Positions 9,001 to 43,856 of a DNA stretch of 64,000 nucleotides are shown in pieces. How positions within the stretch are numbered: position 1 is the stretch's first letter; every line of letters starts with the position of its first letter. Under the pieces are notes generated by a model. That model worked only from the letters and a program-made list of their open reading frames with translations. It was not told the origin of the DNA and ran no database searches. A program made the translations under genes and the position numbers. This DNA is from Macrostomum hystrix (taxonomy: Eukaryota > Animalia > Platyhelminthes). Location: positions 4,092,001 through 4,156,000 of the forward strand of contig CATNEN010000030.1 of the NCBI GenBank assembly GCA_950097015.1, given 5' to 3'.

Positions 9001-9431
9001 ACCGGCAAGGTTGGAGAGCACCACTGCCTGGTTTGAGTAGGTCGGGCCGAAGAGCAGCGCCTTGTTAGGCGGGCTTAGGTAGCCATCATTGAATTTTCGC
9101 AGAGCGCTGCCCTGAAGTTCCTGACGACATGACAGGGACAAATATGAATGAAATCTCGTTGGAATTTCCTACAAACTAGGAAAAGCGGAATAAAGCTCAC
9201 CTGGTTAGCGCACTGGAAAGTGGTCTCAAGGCGGAATGTATAGTTGAAATTGGACTGAGCTGTCAAATTGTTCACATAGGCAATTGCGAAGGTGTAATAT
9301 TCTATGTCAAATCTAGCCGTGTCATTTACCGAGCAGACAACCAGAGTGTGCACGACAGTCCGATTGTCTACCTGAGCAAAAGCACCTGTGGCTGCCACTA
9401 GAAGAAAGAGCAGAAAAGTACTTGTCATCAT
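1..9431 (-). CDS. Class C GPCR of the GABA-B type (signal peptide plus Venus-flytrap/ANF-receptor ligand-binding domain); the 7TM part lies beyond the left edge
   Basis: Hand-built model with canonical GT-AG sites and consistent phase. Exons: 9431-9201, 9120-8980, 8273-8103, 8010-7909, 7671-7600, 7062-6880, 4800-4570, 4496-4433, 4322-4245, 37-<1. Translation: MMTSTFLLFLLVAATGAFAQ...LLFGPTYSNQAVVLSNLAGSYYYLPQ|IAATVTSPALADKSLYPYFSRV...LKRYNWFNVGLL...DMGIRIFIVV...GPRYFWIQLG...RADAVAAAAIALNKT...FIGLT|GRVKLDENGDR...WYQDLEFAGGQAPRDRPKQV. The motif order follows GABA-B receptor ectodomains, including the GG-x-P-x-D linker with no cysteine-rich domain. Confidence 0.85.
96..4185. repeat. 29-bp minisatellite, about 140 units, filling intron 9 of the GPCR gene
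   Basis: Unit GAGAAAGCTAGCCTATATGACTTCAGGTA with recurrent variants (GACTAT, CCAAT, CTAC). Confidence 0.98.
4812..5537. repeat. 23-bp minisatellite, about 31 units, in GPCR intron 6
   Basis: Unit GTGATGTCACACTATCCCAGAGA, grading from ...TATGCCATACA at the left to ...AATCCCGGATA at the right. Confidence 0.95.
6130..6745. repeat. 30-bp minisatellite, about 20 units, in GPCR intron 6
   Basis: Unit AAGATCCTGAAGGAATGGAGGATAGCAGTC; it generates spurious repetitive ORFs on both strands. Confidence 0.97.
7100..7545. repeat. Purine-rich GGA/GGT simple repeat in GPCR intron 5
   Basis: Imperfect (GGTGGGTGAGGAGGAGA)n. Confidence 0.9.
8384..8903. repeat. 14-bp minisatellite in GPCR intron 2
   Basis: Unit CTAGCTACCAAGTA (variants ...AAGAA, ...AAATA). 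Confidence 0.95.
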
Positions 9432-9715
9432 GACAAGCTTCGACTTCGGTGTAAATCCAAATCTCAAGATTTCTTGTGAACTTAAAAACAGTACTGTCCA
9501 ATCTGATGCTGAGAAGCACACTGTGATAAAATCGCTAAAATATGAGCTCCCAAAGCCTGAGTTGTCCTTGACACGTGAGTAGGCAAGGCTCTGATTGGCT
9601 GGTTGACTTTTAGCGAATTGGCAACGCGAAAAAAACGAGAGAGACAACATTGGATGGCTGAATTAATGATTTATAAGTGAAGACTAGTCTGCAAGCTCTG
9701 GTCTATTGTGAATAG

Positions 9716-12700: not shown

Positions 12701-15700
12701 CAAGCTGCTGATTAGAGTGCCAAGCTGCTGATTGAAATGCCAAGCTGATGATTGGAGTGCCAAGCTGATGATTGAAATGCCAAGCTGCTGATTGAAATGC
12801 CAAGCTGATGATTGGAGTGCCAAGCTGATGATTGAAATGCCAAGCTGCTGATTGAAAGGCCAAGCTGATGATTGGAGTGCCAAGCTGCTGATTGGAGTGC
12901 CAAGCTGCTGATTAGAGTGCCAAGCTGCTGATTGGAGTGCCAAGCTGCTGATTGAAATGCCAAGCTGATGATTGAAAGGCCAAGCTGATGATTGAAAGGC
13001 CAAGCTGATGATTGAAATGCCAAGCTGATGATTGGAGTGCCAAGCTGATGATTGAAATGCCAAGCTGCTGATTGAAAGGCCAAGCTGATGATTGGAGTGC
13101 CAAGCTGATGATTGAAATGCCAAGCTGCTGATTGAAAGGCCAAGCTGATGATTGGAGTGCCAAGCTGATGATTGGAGTGCCAAGCTGCTGATTAGAGTGC
13201 CAAGCTGCTGATTGGAGTGCCAAGCTGCTGATTGAAATGCCAAGCTGATGATTGGAGTGCCAAGCTGCTGATTGGGGTGCCAAGCTGCTGATTGGGGTGC
13301 CAAGCTGCTGATTGGAGTGCCAAGCTGCTGATTGGAGTGCCAAGCTGCTGATTGGAGTGCCAAGCTGATGATTGAAATGCCAAGCTGATGATTGAAATGC
13401 CAAGCTGATGATTGAAAGGCCAAGCTGATGATTGAAATGCCAAGCTGCTGATTGAAATGCCAAGCTGCTGATTGGAGTGCCAAGCTGATGATTGAAATGC
13501 CAAGCTGATGATTGAAAGGCCAAGCTGATGATTGAAATGCCAAGCTGATGATTGAAATGCCAAGCTGCTGATTGAAATGCCAAGCTGCTGATTGAAATGC
13601 CAAGCTGCTGATTGGAGTGCCAAGCTGATGATTGAAAGGCCAAGCTGATGATTGAAATGCCAAGCTGATGATTGAAAGGCCAAGCTGATGATTGAAAGGC
13701 CAAGCTGATGATTGAAATGCCAAGCTGATGATTGAAATGCCAAGCTGATGATTGAAAGGCCAAGCTGCTGATTGAAATGCCAAGCTGATGATTGAAAGGC
13801 CAAGCTGCTGATTAGAGTGCCAAGCTGCTGATTGAAATGCCAAGCTGATGATTGGAGTGCCAAGCTGCTGATTGAAAGGCCAAGCTGATGATTGGAGTGC
13901 CAAGCTGCTGATTGGAGTGCCAAGCTGATGATTGAAATGCCAAGCTGATGATTGAAATGCCAAGCTGATGATTGAAAGGCCAAGCTGCTGATTGAAATGC
14001 CAAGCTGATGATTGAAAGGCCAAGCTGCTGATTAGAGTGCCAAGCTGCTGATTGAAATGCCAAGCTGATGATTGGAGTGCCAAGCTGCTGATTGAAAGGC
14101 CAAGCTGATGATTGGAGTGCCAAGCTGCTGATTGGAGTGCCAAGCTGATGATTGAAATGCCAAGCTGATGATTGAAATGCCAAGCTGATGATTGAAAGGC
14201 CAAGCTGATGATTGAAATGCCAAGCTGCTGATTGAAATGCCAAGCTGCTGATTGGAGTGCCAAGCTGATGATTGAAAGGCCAAGCTGATGATTGAAAGGC
14301 CAAGCTGATGATTGGAGTGCCAAGCTGATGATTGAAATGCCAAGCTGCTGATTGAAAGGCCAAGCTGATGATTGGAGTGCCAAGCTGATGATTGGAGTGC
14401 CAAGCTGCTGATTAGAGTGCCAAGCTGCTGATTGGAGTGCCAAGCTGCTGATTGAAATGCCAAGCTGATGATTGGAGTGCCAAGCTGCTGATTGGGGTGC
14501 CAAGCTGCTGATTGGGGTGCCAAGCTGCTGATTGGAGTGCCAAGCTGCTGATTGGAGTGCCAAGCTGCTGATTGGAGTGCCAAGCTGATGATTGAAATGC
14601 CAAGCTGATGATTGAAATGCCAAGCTGATGATTGAAAGGCCAAGCTGATGATTGAAATGCCAAGCTGCTGATTGAAATGCCAAGCTGCTGATTGGAGTGC
14701 CAAGCTGATGATTGAAATGCCAAGCTGATGATTGAAAGGCCAAGCTGATGATTGAAATGCCAAGCTGATGATTGAAATGCCAAGCTGCTGATTGAAATGC
14801 CAAGCTGCTGATTGAAATGCCAAGCTGCTGATTGGAGTGCCAAGCTGATGATTGAAAGGCCAAGCTGATGATTGAAATGCCAAGCTGATGATTGAAAGGC
14901 CAAGCTGATGATTGAAAGGCCAAGCTGATGATTGAAATGCCAAGCTGATGATTGAAATGCCAAGCTGATGATTGAAAGGCCAAGCTGCTGATTGAAATGC
15001 CAAGCTGATGATTGAAAGGCCAAGCTGCTGATTAGAGTGCCAAGCTGCTGATTGAAATGCCAAGCTGATGATTGGAGTGCCAAGCTGCTGATTGAAAGGC
15101 CAAGCTGATGATTGGAGTGCCAAGCTGCTGATTGGAGTGCCAAGCTGATGATTGAAATGCCAAGCTGATGATTGAAATGCCAAGCTGATGATTGAAAGGC
15201 CAAGCTGATGATTGAAATGCCAAGCTGCTGATTGAAATGCCAAGCTGCTGATTGGAGTGCCAAGCTGATGATTGAAAGGCCAAGCTGATGATTGAAAGGC
15301 CAAGCTGATGATTGAAATGCCAAGCTGATGATTGAAATGCCAAGCTGCTGATTGAAATGCCAAGCTGCTGATTGAAATGCCAAGCTGCTGATTGGAGTGC
15401 CAAGCTGATGATTGAAAGGCCAAGCTGATGATTGAAATGCCAAGCTGATGATTGAAAGGCCAAGCTGATGATTGAAAGGCCAAGCTGATGATTGAAATGC
15501 CAAGCTGATGATTGAAAGGCCAAGCTGATGATTGAAATGCCAAGCTGATGATTGAAATGCCAAGCTGATGATTGAAAGGCCAAGCTGCTGATTGAAATGC
15601 CAAGCTGATGATTGAAAGGCCAAGCTGCTGATTAGAGTGCCAAGCTGCTGATTGAAATGCCAAGCTGATGATTGGAGTGCCAAGCTGCTGATTGAAAGGC

Positions 15701-16081
15701 CAAGCTGATGATTGGAGTGCCAAGCTGCTGATTGGAGTGCCAAGCTGCTGATTAGAGTGCCAAGCTGCTGATTGGAGTGCCAAGCTGCTGATTGAAATGC
15801 CAAGCTGATGATTGGAGTGCCAAGCTGCTGATTGGGGTGCCAAGCTGCTGATTGGAGTGCCAAGCTGCTGATTGGAGTGCCAAGCTGCTGATTGGAGTGC
15901 CAAGCTGATGATTGAAATGCCAAGCTGATGATTGAAAGGCCAAGCTGATGATTGAAATGCCAAGCTGATGATTGAAATGCCAAGCTGCTGATTGAAATGC
16001 CAAGCTGCTGATTGAAATGCCAAGCTGCTGATTGGAGTGCCAAGCTGCTGATTGGAGTGCCAAGCTGCTGATTGGAGTGCC
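9716..16081. repeat. 20-bp satellite array, about 318 units, with variant units and higher-order structure
   Basis: Unit CAAGCTG(A/C)TGATTG(AAAT/AAAG/GAGT/GGGT)GC, plus a rarer ATTAGAGTGC variant; register is kept across 6.4 kb. Confidence 0.99.
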
Positions 16082-16747: not shown

Positions 16748-16812
16748 CTATTGATTCTGCTGGCGCCCTTTGTACTCGCCTAAGAAGCTTCCATCTTCAT
16801 TGAACTTGTCCA
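16748..16812 (-). CDS. Orphan terminal exon encoding an L1CAM-type ankyrin-binding motif (paralog A tail)
   Basis: Acceptor aattgcag followed by TG GAC AAG TTC AAT GAA GAT GGA AGC TTC TTA GGC GAG TAC... = (M/V)DKFNEDGSFLGEYKGRQQNQ*. Same phase as, and homologous to, the terminal exons at 22849-22922 and 28491-28576. Confidence 0.8.
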
Positions 16813-17079
16813 CTGCAATTGAAACAGAAAAAAATATTTCCTTACAATTAGATTATTGGGACATTATGACAGGTAAAATATAAACATACTCTTATATCTC
16901 GTCTATGAAATTGGCGTAAGTACGAGCGGTGTCCCAAAAATAGTGGGAAAGCTCGATGCACAGGCTAAGTAGTAAACAACATTTATTGAAACTCACGTCA
17001 CTGACAAATAAATATTCAACTGTTCAAAAGCTTTTTGAATCAATTAAAAATGTCAATTTATTTAAAAGTTATGGCTAAA

Positions 17080-17821
17080 ATTATAACAAGGAGTTAGGGA
17101 TAGAGTCAAGGCCCCAGCCCAAGTTTGTCCAAGATGTCGACAAGAAGCTCAACGCCAAGATGTCGCAATGTGGCATGGCATCCTGCCCGGACATGCTGAA
17201 GGCCACCCTTATCCGCTGCCTGCCGAGCGAGCTCCGCATTGCGCTGTCCGGTTTCCAGAAGGAGACGCCGGAGAAACTGGCAGAGATCGCCGACTTCATG
17301 GTCAGCTACCACAACACGGTGGTGGGTTCCGTTAGCGTCGTAAAACCACAACCGTCGCCGATGTACAACGCCTGGCCGAAAGAAGAGCCTCAACGCCGAC
17401 AGCTGCTGCCTCCGGGTAGCCTCGCACCATTCAAGCCTGGACAGCGTCCAGTCATCTGTCGAGCGTACGTCTACTACGGCGATCGGGCACGTACCTGCCG
17501 ACCGTGGTGTCGTTTCCGCCGGCCCCGGGGGACAGGCGACCGCGGATCCTTGACAACCACGAGATAACGCTAGCTCAGTCTATGGCTGAGTCACCGACAC
17601 GCCAGTCGTCAAACTAGAAGGCAATGCCCAACCCGCCGCAGTCAGTAGTGGACCACCCTCGGCGGCGAGCAAGAAATTCCTGATGTCAAAATCGACAGCC
17701 AATACTACCCGTTCCTAGTCGACACTGGCGCAGCGGTATCGATAATTCCGCAGAAACAATTCCACTGGGACCTTCAGGAGACCGGTTTTCGCCTTACCAC
17801 CGCCACAGGTGCACCAGTCCA
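17080..17821 (+). mobile_element. Internal fragment of a Ty3/gypsy LTR retrotransposon (gag C-terminus plus aspartic protease), degenerate
   Basis: Gag-like ...LKATLIRCLPSELRIALSG...PEKLAEIADFM...ICRAYVYYGDRARTCRPWCRF (17160-17567), then protease YPFLVDTGAAVSIIP...LTTATGAPVQL (DTG at 17721). There are stops between gag and protease, no LTRs are seen, and the protease is cut off at about 17821. Confidence 0.85.
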
Positions 17822-18502
17822 GCTGATCGTAACAACTATTTGGGGATCAATGAATTGAAAGCTGGAAAACGAATCGCTTGTACTCGAAGAATTCGTCTGG
17901 ATCAGGAAGTTGATTGCGTCATCTGTTAGAAATCGTTGATAATAGTTGTCAATGATGACACCTGGCTTATTAACAGTTAAACTTGATTTGCTGATTGCAT
18001 TCAGATTGTATACAAAAAGACTGTTGGACGAAATTAATCCACTAGTAAAATCCACACGAACTTGCAGCTGAACATTCTGAGAAAAGGCTGTGTCGTAGGT
18101 TTGCATGGAGTCAAGAAGTGTGAAGTGGTAGTCGACACCTTCTCTACCGCTCACCTTACCGATGGTAAATGGCATTGTGCTGCCACAGTATTGAGTACTC
18201 AACTGAACACTGTCGAGTGCTACGTCCACACTAGCACTAGAATCTGAGCACTTGTATTTTAGAATCTTGAAACCGGAGCTGCTGCTGACGTCACCTCCGA
18301 TGTTGATCCGGATAATGAGTTTCTTGTCCTTGTTAAGGAAGGCCAGCTTATTTGAGACGCCAACTTCCCAGACATCGTCCCACGAGAGCATTATATTGTT
18401 TGACTGTGAGTAGACGAACTGCGGCGACTTTTGAGCACAACTGACAGCCAGCAGTGCCGCTAGCAAAGCAATGAGAAGCAATAGGCTCTTGCTCTGAGAC
18501 AT
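17774..18502 (-). pseudogene. Truncated paralog A of the L1-tail receptor family (signal peptide plus N-terminal domain only; pseudogene or secreted form)
   Basis: 242-aa open frame, about 98% nucleotide identity (by eye) to the first ~230 codons of the gene at 25719. Homology ends at about 17821, where gypsy protease sequence begins; the last ~15 codons and the stop come from antisense transposon DNA. ATG at 18502 is directly preceded by a tttcctttag acceptor. Confidence 0.8.
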
Positions 18503-18790
18503 CTAAAGGAAATATTGGTTCGTGAGTTCGTACGAGTTATTGCTGCATTGTTAAATATGTGCACACAGTGAGGATGCCTGCTAAAAAACTCTTCAGGATG
18601 TTTGCTCTCATGCACTATAGAGGTCTGATATATTTTTTTAACGATTAACTTTTGAAAAGGGCGTTTCAAACAGGTGTTTGGTTTTCACAGTTCAGTCCCA
18701 TAACCGTTGATAGGCCTCGCTATGTTTCCCTGGGAAAAGACTATGGGGATTTTTAAATACCCGCTGCCGCTGCCTGCTTCACGACAGCTC

Positions 18791-20294
18791 CCAAATCGAT
18801 TGACCGATTTTCGTAGAAATCCAGCAATTGAAAAATCCCCGCCATTTATGTAACTTTCAAAGCCGACCGACGTCAACATCGACGAGATATTCAGCGATTC
18901 TTGTCGAAGACCCTGTTGATAGGGACAACCAACATTTAAGCAATTTAATCCTTAGTGAAAAATCTGGCTATTAAAGAATTGTTTTTCATTGTCTATGGCC
19001 TGAAAATGGGTCTATGGAGCAATCATTTGAGAATCTGGGCGCGCTATGAATCCTTTCCATATATGTGCAAGCCTTAGACCATAGAAAATAACAGATTTTA
19101 TGAGACAAACAGATATGGCAGACAAAGAAATTAGCGAGCAGAGCACTGATGAAAGTTTTGCTACAGCCGAAGATGCAGTGGATGAGCAGAATCCTGCAGG
19201 GCGAGAACCCTGTCGCCAGATGAGCAACGAAAAATACGACCTGATTGTCGCTGCCATCGAGAGAGGTGATAGTGCTGAGCACATTTCACGATGGCTGGAC
19301 GTAAAGAGAAAAGAGTAAACAGTGTATCTTTGAAATCACGTGAATCAAAAAAAAAATCCTGTGAAATCACGGGACGCCGGAACCGCGCACGACGGGGTGG
19401 AGATCGAGCATCGAAACTGGAAGAGCAACACATCCAACTGCTTCCTTCATCACTGGATAGCAATCCTCTCAAGACGATGAAAGAGTTGCGATGCAAGCTG
19501 ACTGACACCTATCCAGTTTGAGCTGACCTGGCAGGTTGTAGTACTGCCTCCATATTCTCCATTTCTGAACCCGACCGAGTGTGCGCATTCTTATTTGAAG
19601 GCGGCCATAAAGCGGCAACTTGCGCAGGCACAGATGCAAATCGAATTGGACAATCCACCGCCAGAGACAACACTGCTCGAGTGGCGCGTACTTGTTCTTC
19701 ATCGAATTGCGGAGGAGGCAACGGCTGAGATCACAGTAGCCAAATGCGGTGGCTGGTTTCGGCAGATGCTTCGCTTCATCCCGCGCTGCTTAAACGAGGA
19801 AGAAATTCTCTGAAAATTGATCGGGTCGGATTTCAATCTGTCCAACACTGTTTTGAGAGAACAACACGATTGTATATCGCTTGTATTGTATACACGCTTG
19901 TATACACGATTGTATACACGCTTATACTGTATGCCATGGTTTTGCCTTTCCCTGTTTTCATTGGTTGCTCTGTAGTAAGTTTTTATGTCAATCGTTTTAG
20001 ACGTGCCATCTACGAGTATTTGCAGACATTGTTTCAGTGAAGCTATTCATATTCATCAACACAAAAATATACGAGCACTGTGGAAAGCATTCATAGCGCG
20101 CCCAAATTCGCAAATTCATTGCTCCATAGACCCCTTTCATGCCATAGACAATGAAAAGGAAGTCTTTAACAGCTTGATTTTTCTACTAAGGATTAAATTG
20201 CTTGTTACTTTGCTTAATTGTTTTAAAAAATGCTATATTATTGAACCAATAATTCATGTGGTGGACATTGACGAAAATGGGTCAATCGGTTTGG
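18791..20294 (+). mobile_element. Internally deleted IS630/Tc1/mariner-family DNA transposon with long imperfect terminal inverted repeats
   Basis: 18938-19070 is the reverse complement (roughly 85%) of 20080-20203, and 18791-18814 matches the reverse complement of 20271-20294. Inside are frameshifted HTH pieces (...GGDRASKLEEQHIQLL...NPLKTMKELRCKL) joined directly to LPPYSPFLNPTE (19544-19579), the last catalytic motif of DDE_3 transposases. Exact outer ends and TA TSD were not resolved. Confidence 0.85.
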
Positions 20295-22848
20295 TATCAA
20301 GCTAAATTATGCATCTGCATAATTGATTCCCAACTGTGCTACAGTCGGAAATTCTATTCAGGTGGGAAAGCACAGCCTATATAAATAATGAGAAAGGATG
20401 ACGGCGGCCTTTTGTACTCAGAATTCCACAGGGATTATGGAAGCCATGCATCACTCAGCCTATCTGTAGCTCGTATAGCTCTGTATTGGGACAGATTTAG
20501 CAAAACTGTCTGGAAAAGTACACCTGCACGCAATAAAATACTAAAATACTAGCGCTGCCCTAGTTCTGTGGGAGGGCTTGGGAATAGGAGGTCTGCGGTT
20601 TCCCGTGCACGCTCACCTCCGCTCGCCACCCCCTCCTCTTTCTCTCTCTCGTTCCAGCTGTCTGCGCACTGAGTCATATTGCACGCCATGGTGCAATCGC
20701 TTCGGTTCGGAAGAAGACTGGCAGAATATCGCTCAAATGCTCCCTCAAATGCTCCTATTATAAGTAGAGCACAGTCCGTCGAATACTCCGGATGGTGTTA
20801 GCATTGTGGCAGCACACTTTCTCTACTTAGATGGCACATCTAGGACTGTTTTTTCTTCATGCGTTTGCCTTCAACTTAGAAGCGTAAATTTGCTCTTTGT
20901 GTCTCAGTCGTCAAGACTAGGATACGCTATGTTGACTAAGTTAGACATTCCTCATAGAGACTTAGAGAACTTACACTTACACTTAGAGAACTCCCCATCC
21001 CTAAGTTAGGACCCCAACGGGGAAATTTGTCAATCCTAGCCTGACTACCAGGTTGTGTCCACTGCGAAGACGCACCAGTGTTGAGGCCGGTAAAATCCTC
21101 TCTGAGTCTAGCGTTCCTGTCTTGGTTATTTTACCAATTGTGTGTGCCACGCTACCACAGGTACAACAATACTTATTAATTGGATTGACGATAAATATTT
21201 AATTCAACGAGAGGTTTGTAACAATATGCGAAGCTTAATAGTAAGTCAATACCTATTGGCGACAAACTTGCGGAGCACAATAATTATCCAGCAAATTTGG
21301 TGCGTCACGCTCTGCTCTGGCAGTCACAGACAATGCGTACGGACAATGGCTTCAGCTACTACGCCAAGCTAGGTTGTATGAGTATAGATGGCATAATGAG
21401 ACCTACCCGATGCTAGGAAATCAGAAGCGGCTACCTCATCATTTATCCTGCCTAGGCTGTCCCAACACCAGCCAGCGCAGCTTCCGCACGTCCGCCCGCT
21501 TGTGAGCTAAACAGCCTGATATATACCTACCGCGCAGCCAAGGTTTATTCAATTGCACTTCCACTGCGTCTGATGTCGCATTAAGAAAAAACCATAGCAG
21601 AACCTAAGATACTTTCGCTAAACCGAAGCAATTAGCTTTTTTATTGCGCTTTTAACTGGCTTAAAACCCAGTTGACTTCTAAAATTAGGGACTCGCGCAA
21701 ATAAAAAAGAAAAAAATATTTTATTTTATTAAGCCAGATTATTGCGAGCTAATTTAAATAAATGAGCACAGCAAGTGGAAAACACTTGACAGCAATAACA
21801 AGAACAACTGTAGAAGCCGAATAAAATTGAAAAAATCCATACTGTCAAATATGTATGTCGTTAAGTCATATAGTAACGATGATTAAATGAAATTTTAAGG
21901 TCATTTAGTGCTCAATAAAAAATGTAAATACTAAAAATAATTATCAATAGCTACTAATAGCGAGCAGCAATTTGTGTTGTACACGATTTGAAATACACTC
22001 GAATAAAAAATGATTCAAATGATAAAAAAGGACAAATAACATCCATCGTCTGTGTACTCACAAAAAGAAATTTCTGCAAGGACTGGAAAATTGAAATCAA
22101 AGAATTGTGTACAATATTAGAGAAAAAACTATTATTAAAATTACTCGACCAAAACCTTCAAAAGCCTCAGTTTCAGCTACAGGGTCATTGTGTCAAAGAT
22201 GGTGTTTAAAGATCAGAAAAAGCCAGTAAAATGAGCTAGCAATAAATTCATGTTGTATAATGGACTGAATAAAAAATCACAAACAAGGCTAAAACAACCC
22301 AGCGCTGTCATTAGGACTAGACGCTGAGGATAAAGTTTGAGCGGATAAAAACACATTGGATAATTAGAAAGCGAATCATCAAATAGCATGCTTAAATCAG
22401 TTTTAAATACAATGATTGGATTGATTGGATTCCGCTAAAATAAAGAAAGCGAAAAAATAGATCGTGCAATACAATATGGATAAAGTCTAAACGACAAAAA
22501 TAGCGAAAAAATCATCAAACTTTGGCAGCAGAAATCAAAGCTAAGCGCGATTCAAATACTGTGCAAAATCAGCTTCAAAAATTGATTTGAGAAGCGAATA
22601 AATATAGTAAATTCGATTTAAGCATTGGCTAAAAATGAGAGCAGTCATGCGCCGCAGACAGGCTCCACGACTAGAAATAGTCTAAACACAAAAACAATCG
22701 ATTAGACTATTGTTGTCTTTGGTGTTTCAGAGCTAGAAAAAAAACATCAGGGTTGTCTCTACGATAATCGCAACTTACTAGTGTTCGATTGCAAAATTGA
22801 GTTCTTCCATTTCTTGCTTTTACCCAAAACGTTTAAACGTTGCCTCTA

Positions 22849-25719
22849 CTATTGCTTCTGGTTTTGCTTGTCTCCGTCGTGATATTCACCCAAGAAGCTG
22901 CCATCTTCGTTGAACTTGCCCACTGCGAATAAATATTCACAAAACGGAAGTTATGTAATGCAAAATTGTACAGAAATGATACTACTGCAAAATTTTACAG
23001 ACCAAAAAACCTATTCTGAGTTCGAAAAATGTTTCAAAAGGATGAAAAACCCGATACGTGAACCCAAAAATGAAGTATTCGAAAACTCACTGTCTAGTTC
23101 GTCGTCTTTGTATTCGTCCAATTCCTTGTCGTCACGACTGCCGATAGAAACGGCAGAATTCAGTGAAGCCCGTCTGCCATGCATTGGAGCTTCTTCAAGC
23201 GGCTGGTACTCTTTAAAGTGCTCCTCCTTGGCCTCCAGATCAGGGTTATTGCCCTGCTGGCGCTCCTTCTCATCCACCATGTAAGTTTGACCAGAATCTT
23301 TTCGGATAAGGAGAACGAGCAAAATGATGGCGATAATTACGATAAGAACAGCTAGACTGATTCCAGCAATGAGGCCTGCGCTGGCACTGGTTGGTTGCTG
23401 CGGGACGTCGCTAATCCACTCAAAGCCAAGGCCCATGCTCAACTCGCTCAGTTGATTGCCGATGTCGAAGTCGGTCGAGTAGAAGCACGTCTTGTCGGCT
23501 CGGCAGTCATATCCTCTGAAGGACACAGAGGGCTGCCCGTAGCGCTCCTTGTGCAAGCGAAGATTAGAAACTTTCGAAACATCGACCTCCTTGAACCCGA
23601 AGTTAAAAACTGGCGTCAATGTCTTGTACCTCTGCAATATCTCAATTACATTCCGGTTGCGAGTAGGCAACACTTTGAACAGTAGGCGATTCGTCACTGG
23701 ATCAAACAGTGATTCAGAAATTTCCTTTGCATGGATGCTGTGGATGTTCTCGAGCAGCTCGTCGTCGATTCTAAAATAGGCAGTGACCTTGATACCAGCC
23801 TTTTTAAGCGAATGAGTCAGGTCCGAATTCAGTGAGATCTCAAAGATGCCACCTCGTTTGTTGGAACATTTTTGCACAGAACAATCCTTGGCAAACGTTC
23901 GATTGAAGCTGAGAATCGAAGGCCTTTTTAGGAATATAACATTGCTGCTGCTCTGAACACTGTACGATGGAAGTCCAACCTTGTTTGCGTCGGCAGGGCT
24001 CACTTCTGCGTTGCAAACAAGTCGATGAGTGAAGTTCAAGTAAGTGGAAGGATCCGAATACGGAACCCTTGATATAGTCAAGTTAAGGGTCTTTGTTTCA
24101 TTCTGAGAAGTAATTGACTGACTGACTGTAGAATCAGACGATGAGAACAGACTGTTAAACTGTGGTAAGTCGAGTTTCCTCCATTTCTGCTGCGCATCGG
24201 AAATAGTGTGAAATTCCGGAGCGATGCTGACTCTGTCCATATTAGTGAAGTAGACCGTGCAGTTGTAGGATAGTGTCTCATTCTCCATTGCATAAACAAC
24301 TGATGGTAAGTCGCCTGACACGATCTGACCTTCGTTTTCATGTAACCTGGTGAGAAACTGTGGCATCGAGACTATTTTCACGTCAAAAGTGAAGCTTTTT
24401 CCGCCAGCCTCGCACCTGTATGCACCTGAGTCACTTTCAAATAGTTCAGGAAGAAATTCAATGAGGTTGCCTTTTTTGAAAATTCTCAGTCCTTTATAAG
24501 ATTTCCAATCATCGGTGCTACTTGGCACAAGACGCTGATTACCATGGTAGAAACTGTATGGTTGAGTGGGATCATCACAGATGATTGGACACACTAGCGG
24601 AGTGTAGTCCATGCCTGCAAAGATCCTTACTGACTGTGATGTACTCGTACCAACAAGAGAACACTGCCGCAGCATAGATCCTCGCGGCAGATAACTCACA
24701 AGGCTTGTCGGTATTATATGCTTCACCTCATCAATTTTCCTATATGCTCGGGTCTGACCAGCCAAGGACGTCAAAGAACAGATAGCAATCTCTTTGGAAT
24801 GCATGTTTTTAAAAAATCTATACATTTCTGTCGTAAGAGCGTGAGTTGAGTAATACAACTTCCCATCGTCCAAGCTCAAGGCCCAGTGCGTGAGCAGATT
24901 AATATTCTTCGGGTTAATCTTTGAAAAATAGTTGACAAACATGGAGATAAAGGGCGAACTATATGATTGGCAGTCGCCAGAATCAAACTGCAACATGGCG
25001 CCAATATTTATTTTCGCTTTGATGAATGCTGGTGCAGAGCTGATCATAGCAACAATTTGGGGATCAATGAACTGAAAGCTGGAAAACGAATCGCTTGTAC
25101 TCGAAGAATTCGTCTGGATCAGGAAGTTGATTGCGTCATCTGTTAGAAATCGTTGATAATAGTTGTTAATGATGACACCTGGCTTATTAACAGTTAAACT
25201 TGATTTGCTGATTGCATTCAGATTGTATACAAAAAGACTGTTGGACGAAATTGATCCACTAGTAAAATCCACACGAACTTGCAGCTGAACATTCTGAGAA
25301 AAGGCTGTGTCGTAGGTTTGCATGGAGTCAAAAAGTGTGAAGTGGTAATCGACACCTTCTCTACCGCTCACCTTACCGATGGTAAATGGCATTGTGCTGC
25401 CACAGTACGGTGTACTCAACTGATCACTGTCGAGTGCTACTTCCACACTAGCACTAGAATCTGAGCACTTGTATTCTAGAATCTTGAAACCGGAGCTGCT
25501 GCTGACGTCACCTCCGATGTTGATCCGGATAATGAGTTTCTTGTCCTTGTTAAGGAAGGCCAGCTTATTTGAGACGCCAACTTCCCAGACATCGTCCCAC
25601 GAGAGCATTATATTGTTTGACTGTGAGTAGACGAACTGCGGCGACTTTTGAGCACAACTGACAGCCAGCAGTGCCGCTAGCAAAGCAATGAGTAGCAATG
25701 GGCTTTGGCTCCAAGGCAT
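22849..25719 (-). CDS. Paralog B: type I membrane protein with a novel Ig-containing ectodomain and an L1CAM/neuroglian-type cytoplasmic tail
   Basis: Exon 1 25719-23091 (ATG after an attgcag acceptor; donor A|gtgagt) and exon 2 22922-22849 (attcgcag|TG GGC AAG...TAG). Features: signal peptide, I-set-like Ig strand DSGAYRCEAGG, second Ig-like unit (NCTV...LVCNAEV), TM AGLIAGISLAVLIVIIAIILLVLLI, tail RKDSGQTYMVDEKE...FKEYQPL...ELDEYKDDELDMGKFNEDGSFLGEYHDGDKQNQKQ*. Confidence 0.9.
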
Positions 25720-28490
25720 CTGCAATAAGAATCAGAAAATGTAGTAAGTACAGATTTTGCTAAAATAGATCAATAATAAAAAGTTGACTAAAGATGTAAG
25801 CATCTGCTAATCATATGACTAGATAAATTAGGTCCTGTTTCTACTTTGATAGAGCACTCGTGCTCTTTTGTTGTTATTTTTGAGTGGCGCAGATATAAAA
25901 ACGAAAACTAAACACAAACTAAAACTCTTTACGAACTAAAAGAAGAACTTTTTACATTTATGTAAGAAAAAAATTATACTTGACCAACGTGAACAATTTG
26001 TGGTATTACAAACTGTAGTGAATTAACTTTTTTTCTTTTTTTCAGCGCAGCATTTTTAAGCGGACATTGCGGAGATGGTGTCACCGACTGCATAGCGATG
26101 ACACGGTGATAAGCTAAACAAAGAGGTAAAAAGTGGATAATTACTACAGGGATTAGTCGAAACGACATTAGCAAAATAAAGCTGCTTTTGAAGGAAATTT
26201 CAAATAGTTAAGTTGCAGTTCAAAGTATACACCTTTAAAAGGTTGGATTTTAGTTGCAAAAAAGAGGGACAGAAAAAATTAACCATTTGACAACATAGCG
26301 CAGGCCAATGAAAGCTGGAAAGCAGGCTTATAAAACATTGACTCGCAAAGAAAAAAGAGAGCGCAGCGAAAAACCGCATTCGAAATATTATAGCCTACAA
26401 ATACATATATATATATATATATCGTACAAGTTCTCAGCTTCGCACTCAGCTCCGATAAAAAGTGCCGTGTCAGGAACACCAGTCCGGAAACTTTTGCAGC
26501 ACCCCTCGTACTTACAGATTAAATCAGGCAAAACTAATAAGGAAACACAGGGCAAGCGTATAATAATAGATAAGAATTTTTAATCCAGCCAAAGTAGGCA
26601 ACAGCTGGCAATGGAAAGTGGGCTCATCAGCATGACACGTCCGCCCTTCCTACATCAAGCTATTAACGGAAATGTAATTAATTTCTACCAACCCTATGAT
26701 GCTTCTGGCCGTTAGGAAGCTGTGATGTACGTTGATTTTTAAGCAAGGAAAGGCGAAGGAAGGGCTTTTGAAAAATAATAAGCGGTAACTATGAATACAC
26801 TGATGTAGACTGAAATATGCGTTTACAATCTAAACCAAGCCGATGTTAAACTGCTTGACAACCGTATGCTCACAGAAGAAGTTAAAAATAGCTAGAACTA
26901 ACAGATTTAAACGCTTTATTGCTTGTAGCCCAATAATTAGAGCTTCGGACTTAATTAGATCTTAAACAAGACACTAAATTTATTCAGGTTACCCAGCTTC
27001 AAGAAATTTGCTTTAGCATTAGCTGGGGTAAAAATTCTGGTGACCCAGTCCATAGGCTGAACAGGTGTCATTTCTGTGGGCCCAACTGGGTAAGGTGCTA
27101 TAATAATTCATTCTTTCATTTTTAATGGCTTAAATGAACCCAATTTAGGGCAGTATAAACGCATGTGCAGGGGTAGCAAATTTACAATATGCTTTTTAAA
27201 GAAGCGGCAAAAAAATTAAGATAAAAAAACTGAAATTTTATACGGACTGAACAAGTTTTCTATGAAGTCCAATCAATGAATTCAGCATTGACAATGACAA
27301 TGACCGGGACTAACTGTAAATAGTAAACAATGCTAGCGAAATTTAAAAAGTAAAAAAGCGACAGAAAAAGCGATAACTTTAGTTTGTGATTATAATAGTA
27401 CATAGAAATTGTACTTAACGGCAACTGTGGAGACGCGAGAAAAAAACTATTTTTTGCTTTAAAAAGCGACCAACATTACACTATACTAGATATGCTATTA
27501 AATGTTTTACTCGTAGTTGCATAGTTGAACAGAACTAATAACAGACAAATTGCAGTTTCAAATTCAACAAAATTTGCAATTCGAAAAAACGACTCGCATT
27601 GATTGCACACAGAGTAGCATAGTATCGCATTGTGCGTGTGTGTGTGTGTGCGTGGTTGCTCAGCTCGCAGCGCCCTAGCAAAGCCAGTCTGTACGCAGTC
27701 ACGACAAGTAAAACCCCATCCATTTAAGGAAAGGTCTTCACAAAAACGCAGCTACAGCCCCAGAAATGAGAGAGAGAGAGAGACCTTGGTTTCCTAGAAA
27801 AAACTTAGTCCGTTCAAACCCCCCACACACATTCCCAAGCACAAGCCCGGGAGGCAGGCTGATTGTGCGCGCACACACATACCAAACACAGCATACGAAA
27901 GCCAGTGAAGGGAAGATGCTGATATGTATGTAGTACGTGTACACACACATGCATGTATTTAGCTTGAACTAGTCTATACTTACTAGCAGGCTAGGGGCAA
28001 AGTCAAATATCCATAGATTCAGTTCACATGTATATACGAGCATTATATTATAATTTATAATTTAACTGCGAATTTAGTTTCAATTTTTTACTGTGGCAAG
28101 TGTGACACTAAACCACACACACGCAAACACACGCAGATGCAGCAGACCTATTTGACTTCAGTTTGTAACAAGAAATTAAAAATAAAAGCAACTAACCCTT
28201 TAAAATAACATGAGATTTCAACAATCCTCTTTTTTTAGCACAAATATTGCGAGAGATATGCGAGGTATAAGAGAAAATGTTTCTTTTGCTCAGACTGCAT
28301 TAAATATGCAGTCGATATGAAATAGATAGTTTGCGAAACAAGCAAATTGAGAGCTATAATAATAATGCGAAAATAAACTAATGTTGTTTAAACTTTGCTT
28401 TCTTAAAAAAACGAGCAATTCACTGCCTATGTAATCAGTCACCTGTCACTTTATCATATGATATTTGCCTTGCATGTAGATTTTTTACTT

Positions 28491-31400
28491 TTAAACCTGG
28501 TGGGCGTTGAAGGCGTCGCGTCGGCGAGCATCGGTGGAGTAGTCGCCAATGAAGGAGCCGTCCTCCACGAACTTAGCTGCAAAATCGGATTTTGTTTAGT
28601 TTTGTATGCATTTGTGTGGGAAAAATTGCTAACTCATTGCCAATCTGTGTGAATTACAACCAGACAAACCCCGCGCACAAGAAGAAGGTGAAGCCAGGTA
28701 AGAGATAACAGATAAGAGATAACGGGCCCATAATTTACTGTGCCTAGGCCCAGTTGAAAGGACGCTGCACCAACGGAAGGGCTTATCTAAAAAAGCGAGC
28801 CAAATGCTATCCGAACAAAATGCTAACTTGCCAAGATCAATGCGCTCGTAGCTTAGTTCACTGCCATTTGGGACAGCAAAACTGCCATAAATTTCTACGA
28901 AACTAAAGTCTGGCTTCTTTCAATACTTCGCCATTCACAACCTCTTTAATATATTCTGCAAAAAAAACAAGAGGCCCACAATAATGGTCTGCCAAGCAAT
29001 TATTTTAGGCATATTTAACGTAAAAACGCTAATGGGGATTTCTAAACACGTGACCGAATCTTAAACCACGCTCGTACCGAAAGGCAAGTCATTGTCAGGG
29101 TCCCACGGTGGGGACACACAATAAAGTATTTTTACAACAAATGTCGTGTTTAACCCTCCTCCTGACCCAAGGCTAATTGTAATTCAGCCCACACTCACTG
29201 CAGTCGATGTCATCGTTGCCATACTCCTCCAGCTCCTGGTCGTCTTTACTAGCAGCAGAAATGCTGGATCCCATAGACAGCCGACTGGCTTTTAGTGGGC
29301 CCTCTTCTGGTCTCTGGTACTCCTTGAACTGCTCCTCCTTGGCCTCCTGCTCTGGATGGTTGCCCTGTTGGCGCTCCTTCTCGTCCAACAGGTAGGTCTG
29401 GCCGGTGTCCCGACGCAGCAGGAAGACAATAAGTACGGCAATGATTAGCAGCAAAACAATCGCTAGTATGATGCCAACAATAATGCTGGAGCCAGCCCTG
29501 GTTGGTTCGTTGACAACTGGCTGATCTTTGAACTCTAGACCGAGCATGAGGCCCTGGAGTGTGCTATTGGCGTCAAAATCAGTCGAATAGAAGCATAAAT
29601 CATCGCCACGGCAGTCGCGAACGCCGGCTACAAGATCCGGCTGGCCGTATCGCCTCTTATCGAATACTAGATTGGGCGCCTTGCTGCCTTCCTTGTAGCG
29701 AAAGTTAAAAACCGGGGTCAACGTCTTGCGCATCTGCAGCTCTTTTAGCACCTCTGGTTTGGTGATCGGATTAACCTTGAAAGTTAGCTTGGTGGACGCA
29801 TTGTCGTAAGAAATCTCGGCAACGCCGGGCGCATTCAATACTTTGACGAACTCCTGATAAGCTTTGTCAATCTTGAAGTAGCCCGTCACCGTCACGCCGA
29901 TTGAGGTTAGATAGGCGACAAGGTCCGGCTTGAGGGAGAACTGGAAGTATGCACCCTGCGCGGCGGTGCAAGATTGTAATGAGCAGTTCTTTGCCATGCT
30001 GAAGCTGCTCAGTAAAGGACGGCTAAGGAAGAAAACATTGCTGCCACTATTCACACTATAGGACGGCATGCCAATTTTCTCGGCGACTGACGTGGCCACC
30101 GACACCTCGCACACGGCGCGGTGGGTGAAATTAATCATTGGCGCAGTCTTGGCAGGCGGCACCCTGCCGATTTTGTAAGTGAGCGTTAGGGACTCTGCCT
30201 GTGACGTTGGTGTTACCGATAGTGGCTTGTCGCCAGAACTAGGTGCTACTATTGAATTGAAATCGACCAGATTGAACTTGCCCCATTTTTCGCCGTCCTT
30301 ACCTAACTTGCCCCATTTGTCGTCACTATAACTATAAAACACTGGAGTGATAAAAGTAGAATTCGCATCGGTGACATATGCAGTGCAATTGTACAGTAGA
30401 CCTTCGCCCTCCATGGCGTATATAGTCGATGGCAAATAGCCAGAAATCACTGACGAGCTAGGAGAAGCGAATAGAGGCATCGAAATCACCTTAGTGTCAA
30501 ACTGGAATTTCAAACCACCAGTCTCGCACCTGTAAACGCCGGAGTATCTATTATCTAAAGTAGGAGGAAACTCGATGACGTTGCCCATATTTAACACTCG
30601 AATCCCATTCACCGACGAAGGGACCGAAATCAGTCTCTTTTCGCCGTGGTAGAAACGGTACTCCTGATTTGGATCGTCGCATATGATCGGACAAACAAAC
30701 GGAGTATAGTCCATACCAGAAAATATAGTCACAGACTTTTTAGCTGAGTCAACGATTCTGCAACTCGGATTTTTGCTGCTAAGTGACGGGTAAATGAATT
30801 CACTTTTGTCTATCTTATTAGTAATACTAAATGACAACTCGTACGGCTGATGCTCGCCTGCAATCGAGAGAAAACTGCAAATACTATGTTGAGGCGAAGT
30901 ATTTTTAGCGTGGAATTTACGCATTGCTGAGCTGAGGCCATAGCGCGAAAAGTGCAGTAGGCCAGTCTCCGTGTCCAAGTTTATGTGCTTCAACAGATTC
31001 TGGTTCTGATCGTTTAACCTCGAATTTTTGTTGACAAAAAGTGAGGCTCGAGAACTTTGATAATTTTCGCAGAAGCCGGAATCGAAGTAAACCATGGCGC
31101 CAATGCTGATCTTTGATTTAAGAAAATCTGGAGCATTTTTTATCATTCTGATTATGTCAGGATCAAGAAACTGAATACTAGTAATATTTTCGGGCATCTC
31201 CATTCTCTGCAGAAAGCTGACAGCTGCGTCTGTCAGAAACGGTTTTTCCATCTTTTTAAAGACATTTAAATTCCATATGAACAGGCTGTTGGATACAATC
31301 TTGCCAGACGTGTGCTCTACATGCACTTGCAGTTCGATTTTGTCAGTAAATGCGTGTGAATACGACAGGCTGGATTCCAGCAGAATGAACTCAAACTGTT

Positions 31401-31734
31401 TGTCACTTCTTAGAGTAATCGAAAATGGCATTGCATCAGAGCAGTAAATTTCAGGTTTACTTATTTTCAATGATTCCAAGTCCATGCCGGACATCTCAGC
31501 GCCCGGGTGGCACTTAAAGTGGAGACTCCTACTAACATTTCCTTCAACTACAATTTTTATGATCAGCCGCCTGTTAGTATGTAAAAATGCCAGACAATTG
31601 GGGGAGCCAACTTCCCAGATTTCATCCCATATCAGCATGACTTTGTTGGTCCGTGAATATTTAAATCTTGGTTTTTCATATGCTGCTATAGTGACAGCAA
31701 TGATGCAGAATAATGTGCCATACCTGAACAACAT
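28491..31734 (-). CDS. Paralog C: type I membrane protein with a novel Ig-containing ectodomain and an L1CAM/neuroglian-type cytoplasmic tail
   Basis: Exon 1 31734-29199 (cacttcag|caatcATG; donor A|gtgagt) and exon 2 28576-28491 (attttgcag|CT AAG TTC...TAA). Colinear with paralog B along its whole length (YSGVYRCETGG; TM IIVGIILAIVLLLIIAVLIVFLL); tail RRDTGQTYLLDEKE...FKEYQRP...LEEYGNDDIDCTKFVEDGSFIGDYSTDARRRDAFNAHQV*. Confidence 0.9.
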
Positions 31735-32555
31735 GATTGCTGAAGTGAAATGTGAAAGACAAATGTATATTAGGTCAAATAAAAACAATTTTGTAAGGTC
31801 TGAACCAACACAGGTAGGTTAGGGTGATTTCAAGGAAATTCAAATTTGGGTTTTGATCTTTTTTCAATTTTGCAAATTTCTGATTTAAACAAAACTCTTA
31901 AAAGCATTCAAAAATAGATTCTTGGGATTTTATTATGTGCAGAAATATTTTTCAATGACAGTACATGATTACGGCTTATCTATAAAAAGTCCATAATCTG
32001 CAATCATTAGCATAAAATTTCTCCGTAACAATAACAAAAAATATGGCTACAAAAAAGCTGCTCCAGTCATATGCTGTAACCATAACTGTCATTACAGTGG
32101 AACACTATGTAGTTTAGATTGAAAAGAAATATACATATTTTAGTTTTAAGAGAAAACAATATAAATATAGAGGATATAGAGGAAACAATTTAACTTCATG
32201 CATCAGTAAAACTATTTTTATTAAAAAACTTCAAATGATATAAAGTAGGCTAGCAGTTTAAGCTTCATGCATCAGTTTAACTAGGCCCTATTCTTATTAA
32301 AAAACTTTAACATTTAGATATTATATTTAGAAAAAATTGTACAATATATTTTCAAAATTAAACTACTTTTCTACAACTTTGTGAATATTTGTTACTATAC
32401 TATTTAGCTAGTAAGAAAAGTTACAAAAAATACATAAGCAAATAGATGCAAAAAGCCATCCAAGTAGGCCTAGTGTCCAAAGCTAAAAAATGGAGAAATA
32501 TTTTATCTTTAAGAATAAAGGATAATAAAGCATTTTTAATATGGCTAGGACTAAA

Positions 32556-35998: not shown

Positions 35999-36430
35999 CA
36001 CTACAAGAGGCCAAGCAGCAAGTTGCAACACTGTCATTTATTGTGGATCCTTTGCTGAATTAAGACACAATCCTGCAGAATTTGGGCACAACATTTGACA
36101 CTCCTCATATACTTTTTGTTTTATTGTTTCAAAATGTTTTCCCAAACATTTTTTGTATTGATTTAAAATTAAACTTTTCAGAGAAGCTGTTTAACAAATG
36201 ATTTTAAAACATTGCCAACATGAGCAAAATCTGATAAACAAAGCTGCATGTATTTATGACATGCTTATGTAAAATAGCAGATTTGAATGTATAAGTGTAA
36301 AATGTAAAGTAAGATAATGTAAATATAAATATAAAGTGTAAAAAACAGGAAGTAACAATTAAAAGTAACAACCATTACTATTATTTTAGTTTTTCATTTT
36401 TTGTTACTAAATGGTAGGGGTCAGACAATA

Positions 36431-43772: not shown

Positions 43773-43856
43773 GGTAGCGGGGATGGAAACGAATGCAGCT
43801 ATTAAGATAAATTGCGCTAATAAACAGTTCCAGGTGACACAGAGGCCTATAAAATA

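Follow-up and report, generated by a model that had tools for sequence, protein, structure and literature searches.

A tandem pair of genes in the flatworm Macrostomum hystrix for probable L1/neuroglian-class adhesion molecules with a compact, heavily modified ectodomain

Two adjacent genes of Macrostomum hystrix, here called G1 and G2, probably encode functional, compact, and very diverged adhesion molecules of the L1/neuroglian class, in which an L1-type cytoplasmic tail follows an ectodomain predicted to consist of five Ig-like domains. Canonical members of the L1 family have six N-terminal Ig domains and three to five FnIII domains in an ectodomain of about 1,100 residues. The predicted architecture of G1 and G2, with five Ig-like domains and no FnIII in about 760 to 780 residues, falls outside this definition. 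They are nonetheless not a new receptor class; their orthologues in M. lignano already carry an automatic Bravo_FIGEY annotation.

The window is the whole stretch of DNA analyzed, 64 kb in length. A six-frame motif scan of it returned three matches to F-x-EDGSF-x-G-x-Y, all on the minus strand, and these are exactly the segments (FNEDGSFLGEY twice and FVEDGSFIGDY once) that a sequence-only reading of this DNA had placed in small exons of three same-strand paralogs. Two of the paralogs are intact genes, G1 (25719-23091 plus 22922-22849) and G2 (31734-29199 plus 28576-28491), with uninterrupted reading frames for about 900 and 873 residues, respectively. The third copy is broken, and what remains of it is a 5' fragment (G3) and an orphan mini-exon. 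In both intact genes, one exon encodes the ectodomain, the transmembrane helix, and most of the tail. Minisatellites and transposon remains surround the gene cluster. The features are as follows.

23091..25719, minus strand: G1 exon 1, an open reading frame of 876 codons plus 1 nt
25719, minus strand: G1 ATG, abutting the trans-splice acceptor AG (25721-25720)
25186..25650, minus strand: G1 D1, residues 24-178; all-beta, with conserved C85-C106; Ig1 position in the predicted horseshoe
24676..25185, minus strand: G1 D2, residues 179-348; seven strands and five helices in the model; predicted Ig2 position in the horseshoe
24352..24675, minus strand: G1 D3, residues 349-456; clearly recognizable as an Ig domain, I-set-like, C377/C381...G-x-Y-R-C436
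23923..24351, minus strand: G1 D4, residues 457-599; Ig-like, carrying one insertion, C487...C569
23395..23922, minus strand: G1 D5, residues 600-775; membrane-proximal, an Ig-like core of ~95 residues with ~80 residues of helical insertions
23302..23373, minus strand: G1 transmembrane helix, residues 783-806; a hydrophobic stretch and a helix in the model
22923..23090, minus strand: G1 intron, 168 nt, GT..AG, phase 1; interrupts the ankyrin-binding region
22849..22922, minus strand: coding part of G1 exon 2; completes a Met codon, then GKFNEDGSFLGEYHDGDKQNQKQ and a stop
22914-22882, minus strand: FNEDGSFLGEY motif of the six-frame scan
29199..31734, minus strand: G2 exon 1, an open reading frame; 44% identity to G1 over its full length
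31734, minus strand: G2 ATG, with a candidate trans-splice acceptor 5 nt before it
28577..29198, minus strand: G2 intron, 622 nt, GT..AG, phase 1; its position matches that of the G1 intron
28491..28576, minus strand: coding part of G2 exon 2; completes a Thr codon, then KFVEDGSFIGDYSTDARRRDAFNAHQV and a stop
28571-28539, minus strand: FVEDGSFIGDY motif of the six-frame scan
17774..18504, minus strand: G3, a partial copy of the 5' end of G1 that arose by recent duplication
16748..16812, minus strand: orphan mini-exon of FIGQY type, its acceptor intact; DKFNEDGSFLGEYKGRQQNQ, then a stop
16804-16772, minus strand: FNEDGSFLGEY motif of the six-frame scan

Exon 1 of G1 encodes a signal peptide, the five predicted Ig-like domains, the transmembrane helix, and 70 residues from the start of the L1-type tail. 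The topology is type I and single-pass, given by a hydrophobic N-terminal leader ending in ...VSCA/QK and by one transmembrane helix (783-806). What G3 retains, from the acceptor and ATG through the signal peptide and D1 into the beginning of D2, has 97% nucleotide identity to the G1 5' end over 684 bp (17821-18504); homology runs out at about 17821, and a stop at 17774 closes the frame. It is a dead partial duplicate, not a gene. The pN/pS between G1 and this fragment is 0.62, and the M. lignano locus has no counterpart of it. The orphan mini-exon, 86% identical to that of G1 over 44 bp and without similarity in its flanks, is a leftover of an older copy.

The sequence-only reading was right about the tail, a true cytoplasmic domain of the L1 family (Bravo_FIGEY). 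Scored without the mini-exon against a cut-off of 23.8 bits, Pfam Bravo_FIGEY (PF13882) matched G1 at 34.3 bits (E 5.5e-8, ORF residues 809-882) and G2 at 37.0 bits (E 7.9e-9). Two full-length relatives from M. lignano, P0001 and P0002, reached 56.7 bits (profile positions 1-86) and 60.9 bits (1-84). Like L1CAM, neurofascin, NrCAM, CHL1, Drosophila neuroglian, and C. elegans LAD-1/SAX-7, the proteins described here are type I molecules with juxtamembrane G-x-x-Y-x-V-x-(D/E)KE and F-x-EY motifs, an acidic D-x-x-L-x-x-Y, and the segment F-N-E-D-G-S-F-I/L-G-x-Y. The juxtamembrane motif, here G-x-T-Y-x-[VL]-x-EKE, occurs at two sites (23292-23263 and 29403-29374), each followed by FKEY, so the earlier assignment of both motifs to both intact genes holds. 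The mini-exon motif can be aligned with the neurofascin segment in PDB 7xce, and the crystal structure of neurofascin with AnkG shows F1202, E1204, F1208, and Y1212 of that segment to be critical for contact with the ankyrin repeats (PMC9396398). F, E, F, and Y stand at the neurofascin spacing in all three mini-exons, and all four ankyrin-contacting residues are thus kept in G1 and G2, whose tail, judged by its sequence, probably couples to ankyrin. It departs from L1 in that the Q of FIGQY is E or D and in that an intron lies just ahead of the F-N-E-D segment. Word-indexed pairwise searches with the tail alone recovered family members only and reached no canonical L1.

Both genes are transcribed and spliced, with high contig depth. 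RNA-derived contigs skip 22923-23090 in four of four runs, which joins 22922 to 23091 in G1. A contig of 3.7-3.9 kb spans 23091-25720 with 0 mismatches, and its loose end at 25720 equals 25 nt from the 3' end of the Macrostomum spliced leader (SL); G1 transcripts are therefore SL trans-spliced right at the ATG. For G2, the X2 contig has a 20-nt loose end at 28576 that matches 29199-29218 at 20 of 20 positions, and the X6 and X7 contigs link 28576 to the G2 tail across exactly 115 intervening letters, which correspond to 29199-29313. Hence both phase-1 junctions proposed from the letters (23091/22922 and 29199/28576) are canonical GT..AG joints used in RNA, and transcripts joining the mini-exons, whose absence would have counted against the gene models, are present for G1 and G2.

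The ectodomain is far less transparent. The one clear Ig domain noted earlier is D3; D4 is weakly recognizable by sequence, and no other ectodomain domain is. Residues 22-348 and 598-778 gave no signal in Pfam, PDB profile searches, or language-model features, and Pfam scans at E up to 10 with D1-D2 and D5 of all family members gave no consistent family. Profile-profile comparison among the five domains (hhalign) yielded probabilities of ~1% or less throughout, D3 versus D4 included, and so has no discriminating power here. Language-model look-alikes of the whole ectodomain were generic Ig clusters, all <0.9; those of D1-D2 alone were noise (0.59). An AlphaFold model (pLDDT 76.8, pTM 0.70), built from 11 sequences, predicts five heavily modified Ig-like domains. 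D1 is modeled as all-beta by DSSP at a pLDDT of about 80. D2 to D5 have conserved Cys pairs with Ig-like spacing (C250-C314 in D2); D5 is bracketed by C613/C618 and C739/C745 and contains an invariant motif, DCR-D-x-x-CFYSTDFD. In D1, D2, and D5, insertions of 50-80 residues, mostly helical, are predicted to mask the sequence signatures. L1 differs in this respect: three of the five domains here would contain sizeable helical insertions, and no Ig signature can be read from their sequence.

Domains D1 to D4 are predicted to fold back into the horseshoe used by L1, neurofascin, contactins, hemolin, DSCAM, and sidekick. Modeled residues 24-598 form this four-domain horseshoe and superpose on ~95% of Ig1-4 of neurofascin, contactins, hemolin, sidekick, and DCC at ~5 Å rmsd (for neurofascin, 374 of 390 residues aligned at 4.9 Å); a Foldseek-independent scan of 48,161 chains returned the same top families. 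Four-Ig arrays of extended shape are a poor fit (Robo1 Ig1-4, TMt 0.27). A four-Ig protein of 420 aa in the ESM Atlas matches at TM 0.68, and the structure given in AFDB for a family member of 17% identity is consistent with the model (TM 0.64 over residues 4-596). Alignments with two AFDB cluster representatives, of 890 aa (E 4.7e-28) and 782 aa (E 2.6e-18), extend along the entire model. The structural Z is 12 for the four domains versus 10.7 for D3 alone. Because D1 and D2 have no sequence link to Ig domains and no PDB match maps to either alone, their assignment rests on one AlphaFold model. For D5, Foldseek gave nothing significant, and a wide structural search placed Ig domains in all of the top 50 rows and FnIII in none. 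An SEA or ferredoxin-like fold, prompted by the beta-alpha-beta-beta-alpha-beta order of D5, was rejected because the same search gives Ig only. The absence of FnIII domains stated in the sequence-only reading agrees with the lack of any Pfam fn3 match and of any FnIII in the model; the ectodomain has no room for further domains. That reading had also proposed structure prediction as a check against a degenerate 6Ig-5FnIII array. The model is no such array, yet the ectodomain still resolves into Ig-like domains, five in number. The horseshoe is common to several IgSF families, and the tie to L1 is the tail only.

The tandem pair is syntenic with M. lignano, where contig NIVC01001207.1 carries a G2-like gene followed by a G1-like gene in a one-to-one relationship with ours. 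BOX15_Mlig011430g1 (P0001) is 67% identical to G1, and its upstream neighbor is 63% identical to G2. The orthologues share the tandem order, the two-exon structure, and the mini-exon, whose 27-residue peptide in G2 is identical at 27 of 27 positions. Orthologue dN is 0.22-0.25 with saturated dS, falling to a dN of 0.023 for the transmembrane helix plus tail of G2; the pair is under purifying selection. It is old, not a rapidly turning-over array. Identity between the paralogs is flat over the domains (36-47%), with no hypervariable domain. Diversifying selection, which the sequence-only reading had supposed, is unsupported because of this flat profile and a dN of ~0.2 with saturated dS. Near-identical transcripts of related samples differ by 11 nonsynonymous versus 6 synonymous changes. 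Positive selection was considered for these and for the pN/pS between G1 and G3, and rejected, since such small numbers fit relaxed constraint and orthologue dN/dS is well below 1. The family in M. lignano includes at least six transmembrane-bearing subfamilies at 50% identity, together with the tail-less relatives P0007, P0008, and P0010. The orthologues of G1 and G2 are recorded as hypothetical proteins and bear automatic UniProt names, either "Bravo_FIGEY domain-containing protein" or "Neurofascin/L1/NrCAM C-terminal domain-containing protein." In the literature searched, four M. lignano locus tags from the family are named in no paper, and L1 in Macrostomum or planarians is not discussed. 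Among 1.84 billion representatives, no sequence homologue was found outside Macrostomum.

It had been proposed that these genes encode lineage-specific receptors in which a new, diversifying, non-L1 recognition module acquired an L1 tail, with roles in allorecognition, gamete recognition, or immunity. The silence of residues 22-348 and 598-778, the multicopy tandem family, and the 11-to-6 changes among transcripts speak for such a module, and lineage specificity stands insofar as sequence relatives occur only in Macrostomum. The novelty of the ectodomain does not stand, as the model gives Ig-like domains throughout and an L1/contactin-type horseshoe resembling a degenerate N-terminal half of the L1 ectodomain. 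The flat paralog identity, the orthologue rates, and the age and one-to-one conservation of the pair also argue against it. Nor does the gene structure hint at exon shuffling, since a single exon holds the ectodomain, the transmembrane helix, and the greater part of the tail. No evidence points to allorecognition, gamete recognition, or immunity, and we consider a new recognition module improbable. Decaying or nonfunctional duplicates with residual motifs, as the broken G3 and the surrounding minisatellites and transposon remains might suggest, are refuted for G1 and G2 by their intact frames (~900 and 873 codons), by abundant spliced transcripts, SL-capped for G1, and by orthologues kept under purifying selection, including the invariant G2 mini-exon.

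An ectodomain of contactin, DSCAM, sidekick, DCC, or hemolin type could instead have captured an L1 cytoplasmic domain secondarily, giving L1-like function without descent. Among the best structural matches to modeled residues 24-598 are contactins (GPI-anchored), hemolin (secreted), sidekick, DSCAM, and DCC. They lack the Bravo_FIGEY tail, their Ig domains are recognizable by sequence, and most have FnIII domains; G1 and G2, with a transmembrane helix and tail, are unlike the tail-less contactin/hemolin type, to whose description P0007, P0008, and P0010 come closer. No intron separates the ectodomain from the transmembrane helix and tail. We know of no horseshoe family other than L1 with a Bravo_FIGEY tail; therefore, one origin of ectodomain and tail is simpler than capture. 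Annotated Bravo_FIGEY proteins of similar size in a tapeworm and in schistosomes further suggest that the form is ancient in flatworms and not a chimera of recent origin. In Schistocephalus solidus A0A183SHS7, residues 1-22 are a signal peptide and 769-792 a transmembrane helix (PMC12090676), versus 783-806 in G1; it shares the automatic Bravo_FIGEY annotation, a comparison made by annotation alone. The Schistosoma "BF" marker gene (4164 nt, seven exons) is likewise automatically annotated as Bravo_FIGEY. These fluke and tapeworm proteins show no similarity to G1 or G2 by phmmer. On balance, tail capture is unlikely, and diverged L1-class molecules remain the preferred reading.

A broader extension of the L1-class reading is tentative. 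Across the flatworms, a compact, FnIII-less form with five Ig domains may have replaced the canonical 6Ig-5FnIII L1, its domains drifting past sequence recognition. In Macrostomum, this form might then have radiated into the at least six transmembrane subfamilies and the tail-less, horseshoe-only relatives, the latter as functional analogues of contactin and hemolin, so that together they would constitute an independently evolved L1/contactin-like adhesion system.

The Ig1-4 horseshoe of L1, neurofascin, contactins, hemolin, DSCAM, and sidekick serves trans binding. In G1 and G2, the predicted horseshoe would mediate homophilic or heterophilic cell-cell binding; upon clustering at contacts, the unphosphorylated F-x-G-x-Y segment would recruit ankyrin and thereby spectrin, and tyrosine phosphorylation of this segment would release ankyrin. 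A fasciclin II-neuroglian chimera still brings ankyrin to cell contacts, indicating that an L1 tail remains functional when the adhesive ectodomain comes from another protein (PMC2133023). As in L1, ERM proteins and adaptors may bind the juxtamembrane G-x-T-Y-x-V-x-EKE and FKEY(QPL) segments.

To our knowledge, the L1 ectodomain plan of six Ig plus three to five FnIII domains has been regarded as fixed in animals ranging from nematodes and flies to humans. In the G1/G2 family, the tail with its ankyrin-binding segment persists, as does, apparently, the Ig1-4 horseshoe, whereas Ig6 and all FnIII domains have been dropped. If confirmed, a minimal L1 would consist of the horseshoe, one spacer domain, a transmembrane helix, and the FIGQY tail. 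As this case shows, structure prediction can resolve "orphan" flatworm ectodomains, and, again if confirmed, the family would provide couplers of adhesion to the cytoskeleton to test in Macrostomum, a regeneration model tractable by RNAi.

The window is animal DNA with a G+C content of ~41-45%, and between 16.7 and 31.8 kb it carries two long minus-strand open reading frames (23011-25725 and 29173-31788) and a third minus-strand frame of 242 codons at 17774-18502. According to a six-frame scan of the whole window, the FIGQY-type motif F-x-EDGSF-x-G-x-Y occurs three times, always on the minus strand (16804-16772, 22914-22882, and 28571-28539), which bears out the three sites located by the sequence-only reading; the juxtamembrane motif G-x-T-Y-x-[VL]-x-EKE occurs twice. 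That reading had counted three paralogs, of which two, G1 and G2, are complete and share 44% full-length identity:

25719-23091 plus 22922-22849, minus strand: G1, ~900 aa, with a canonical GT..AG phase-1 intron in the sequence
31734-29199 plus 28576-28491, minus strand: G2, 873 aa, with a canonical GT..AG phase-1 intron in the sequence

The third copy, G3, is not a gene but a 5' fragment and a diverged mini-exon, the small last exon that encodes the motif. Its homology to G1 is limited to 17821-18504 (97% nucleotide identity, equivalent to G1 residues 1-231), and the reading frame closes at 17774. Divergence is greater in the mini-exon at 16812-16748 (86% identity to that of G1 over 44 bp), whose flanks are unrelated. 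The DNA that takes the place of the G3 body (16813-17820, with 18600-20300 also noted) is unique within the window, and the plus-strand frames there and at 19100-19813, upstream of the fragment, have no Pfam match; these are likely the decayed remains of a mobile element.

RNA contigs from four public runs, placed on 22880-28879, agree with the junctions predicted from sequence for both genes (23091/22922 and 29199/28576). Contigs from all four runs skip the G1 intron (22923-23090) exactly, and contigs of 3.7-3.9 kb from two runs cover 23091-25720 with no mismatch. For G2, a 20-nt loose contig end at 28576 matches the sequence ending at 29199, and two contigs link 28576 to the tail, the 115 letters in between being 29199-29313. 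Past 25720, G1 transcripts continue into 23-25 nongenomic letters (ACTGCGAAGACTCAATTTATTGCAT in minus-strand orientation) that correspond to the 3' end of the published 35-nt M. lignano spliced leader (PMC8629364), a leader conserved genus-wide in Macrostomum (PMC10468722); thus, G1 is trans-spliced at the AG immediately 5' of its ATG (25720-25721). The DNA is from a species of Macrostomum. Similar AGs lie directly 5' of the ATG in G3 (18503-18504) and 5 nt 5' of it in G2 (31739-31740), and both are candidate trans-splice acceptors. Once the leader is joined to G1, its terminal ATG stands in frame, directly 5' of the genomic one. The 2.8 kb separating the G2 stop from the trans-splice site of G1 is also largely covered by contigs (25976-27624 and 28102-28490), at a depth of 24 versus 127-149 on the G1 exon; these could derive from a G2-G1 polycistronic precursor or outron, from a long G2 3' UTR, or from library DNA carry-over. 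Run X1 has, besides spliced RNA, a contig that spans the G1 intron. If the intron were read through, the protein would stop 29 unrelated residues beyond ...DDELD and lack the FIGQY segment; this contig possibly represents an ankyrin-blind isoform or simply unspliced RNA or DNA.

The assignment of the tails to the L1 family holds. Pfam Bravo_FIGEY matches G1 at 34.3 bits and G2 at 37.0 bits with the last exon left out of the query (cutoff, 23.8 bits), and in the full-length M. lignano relatives P0001 and P0002 it scores 56.7 and 60.9 bits over nearly the entire profile. In the PDB, the tail matches a single sequence, the neurofascin part of a fusion with ankyrin-G (7xce), in which ...FNEDGSFIGQY aligns residue for residue. 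The critical contacts in that structure are F1202, E1204, F1208, and Y1212 (PMC9396398), and all four equivalents are kept, with the same spacing, in each of the three mini-exons. A Drosophila fasciclin II-neuroglian chimera retains the ability to recruit ankyrin at cell contacts (PMC2133023), so an L1 tail requires only an adhesive ectodomain. Pfam Syndecan also gives weak matches to the transmembrane (TM) helix and the R-R-D-x-G-x-x-Y segment of G1, G2, and the M. lignano relatives (28.4 bits in P0003 and 29.9 bits in the fused model P0039; cutoff, 25.2), probably a compositional or short-motif resemblance.

The ectodomain had been described as unfamiliar, with one clear and one probable Ig domain and an unassignable remainder. 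At the sequence level this is accurate: residues 22-348 and 598-778 retrieve nothing from Pfam, PDB profiles, or language-model features. Queried with the ectodomain, an exhaustive phmmer search of 1.84 billion representatives matched 15 proteins, nine of them from M. lignano (P0001-P0008 and P0010; identity from 67% down to 24%) and the others confined to residues 350-477, an Ig domain; no homologue by sequence was found outside Macrostomum in this search.

The structure model gives a different picture. The AlphaFold2 model of G1, built from an 11-sequence family alignment, has five compact domains (mean pLDDT, 76.8; pTM, 0.70). In a Foldseek search of the PDB, the top-ranked proteins are contactin, CNTN2, neurofascin, DSCAM, sidekick, DCC, hemolin, and axonin-1, with target-normalized TM scores of up to 0.59 for four-Ig horseshoes versus 0.27 for extended arrays such as Robo1 Ig1-4. 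A Foldseek-independent scan of 48,161 chains returned identical leading families; those in the ESM Atlas agree, with a 420-aa four-Ig protein at TM 0.68, and the AFDB model of a family member with 17% identity agrees over residues 4-596 (TM, 0.64).

Table. G1 model residues 24-598 compared with Ig1-4 modules (aligned/target residues; rmsd; Z)
CNTN4: 363/378; 5.2 A; 12.4
CNTN5: 366/380; 5.1 A; 12.4
Hemolin: 370/391; 5.1 A; 12.2
Neurofascin: 374/390; 4.9 A; 12.1

Conserved cysteine pairs with Ig-like spacing are present in D2 (250/314), D3 (377 or 381/436), D4 (487/569), and the membrane-proximal D5 (613 or 618/739 or 745). D5 modeled separately is confident (pLDDT, 84.7; pTM, 0.82), and alone it has no significant Foldseek match. 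In our reading of the model, the ectodomain would comprise five Ig-like domains, with D1-D4 forming the horseshoe and D1, D2, and D5 enlarged by mostly helical insertions of 50-80 residues.

The M. lignano contig NIVC01001207.1 carries an 890-aa Bravo_FIGEY gene upstream of P0001, the G1 orthologue, on the same strand. It is 63% identical to G2, with a mini-exon peptide identical at 27/27 positions, and P0001 is 67% identical to G1. This shared adjacency means that the tandem pair is older than the split of the two species; the M. lignano locus has no counterpart of G3. Sequence comparison does not uphold the suggestion of a diversifying module. Identity is flat across domains (36-47% among eight TM-bearing members), and over all domains dN against the orthologue is 0.22 for G1 and 0.245 for G2 (0.023 for the G2 TM plus tail), with Nei-Gojobori dS saturated for both pairs. 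Purifying selection, not diversification, acts on an old, diverged family. Near-identical contigs from two runs labeled as other organisms differ from the window at 17 single bases between 23300 and 25348 (11 nonsynonymous and 6 synonymous), counts too small to change this conclusion. They also share an in-frame 9-nt deletion at 23567 (G1 residue ~718, in D5); their source is a sister species or strain, or else another allele.

At least six subfamilies with a TM helix are present in M. lignano, and several of them lie in adjacent gene pairs. The species also has tail-less relatives, which end after D4. These (P0007, P0008, and P0010; 20-28% identity) have no D5, TM helix, or L1 tail, and P0008, which ends in a short hydrophobic stretch, may be GPI anchored. 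As horseshoe-only relatives, they would be reminiscent of contactin and hemolin beside L1.

On either side of the gene cluster lie very large minisatellite arrays (89-16074, 43532-52956, and 62421-63862; periods of 14-31 bp), including a 29-bp unit in 142 copies (89-4212) and a 20-bp unit in 318 copies (9716-16074); they yield long spurious ORFs. Other features of the window are as follows:

36407-38059, minus strand: RVT_1 ORF of a LINE-type element, 550 aa (E, 9e-22), in a G+C-rich patch
42213-42773, plus strand: glyoxalase-fold protein (Glyoxalase_4; E, 3e-22), methylmalonyl-CoA epimerase-like
53932-55224, minus strand: Cys-rich predicted membrane protein, 430 aa, no Pfam match
60481-61530, plus strand: acetyl-CoA-synthetase-like first exon (ACAS_N plus AMP-binding)

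Overall, the ectodomain is best explained, on the structure model, as a degenerate L1-type Ig horseshoe with one extra Ig-like domain. Canonical L1 proteins have a 6Ig/FnIII architecture, which G1 and G2 lack; yet they share the defining tail of L1 and would work as L1 does. Two AFDB cluster representatives (890 and 782 aa) align with the full length of the model, and these matches are much better than those of generic IgSF proteins. A Schistocephalus solidus "Bravo_FIGEY domain-containing protein" is listed with residues 1-22 as signal peptide and 769-792 as TM helix (PMC12090676), and the Schistosoma "BF" marker gene is on record with 4164 nt and seven exons. Together, these records suggest, rather than demonstrate, that a compact L1 is the norm in flatworms.
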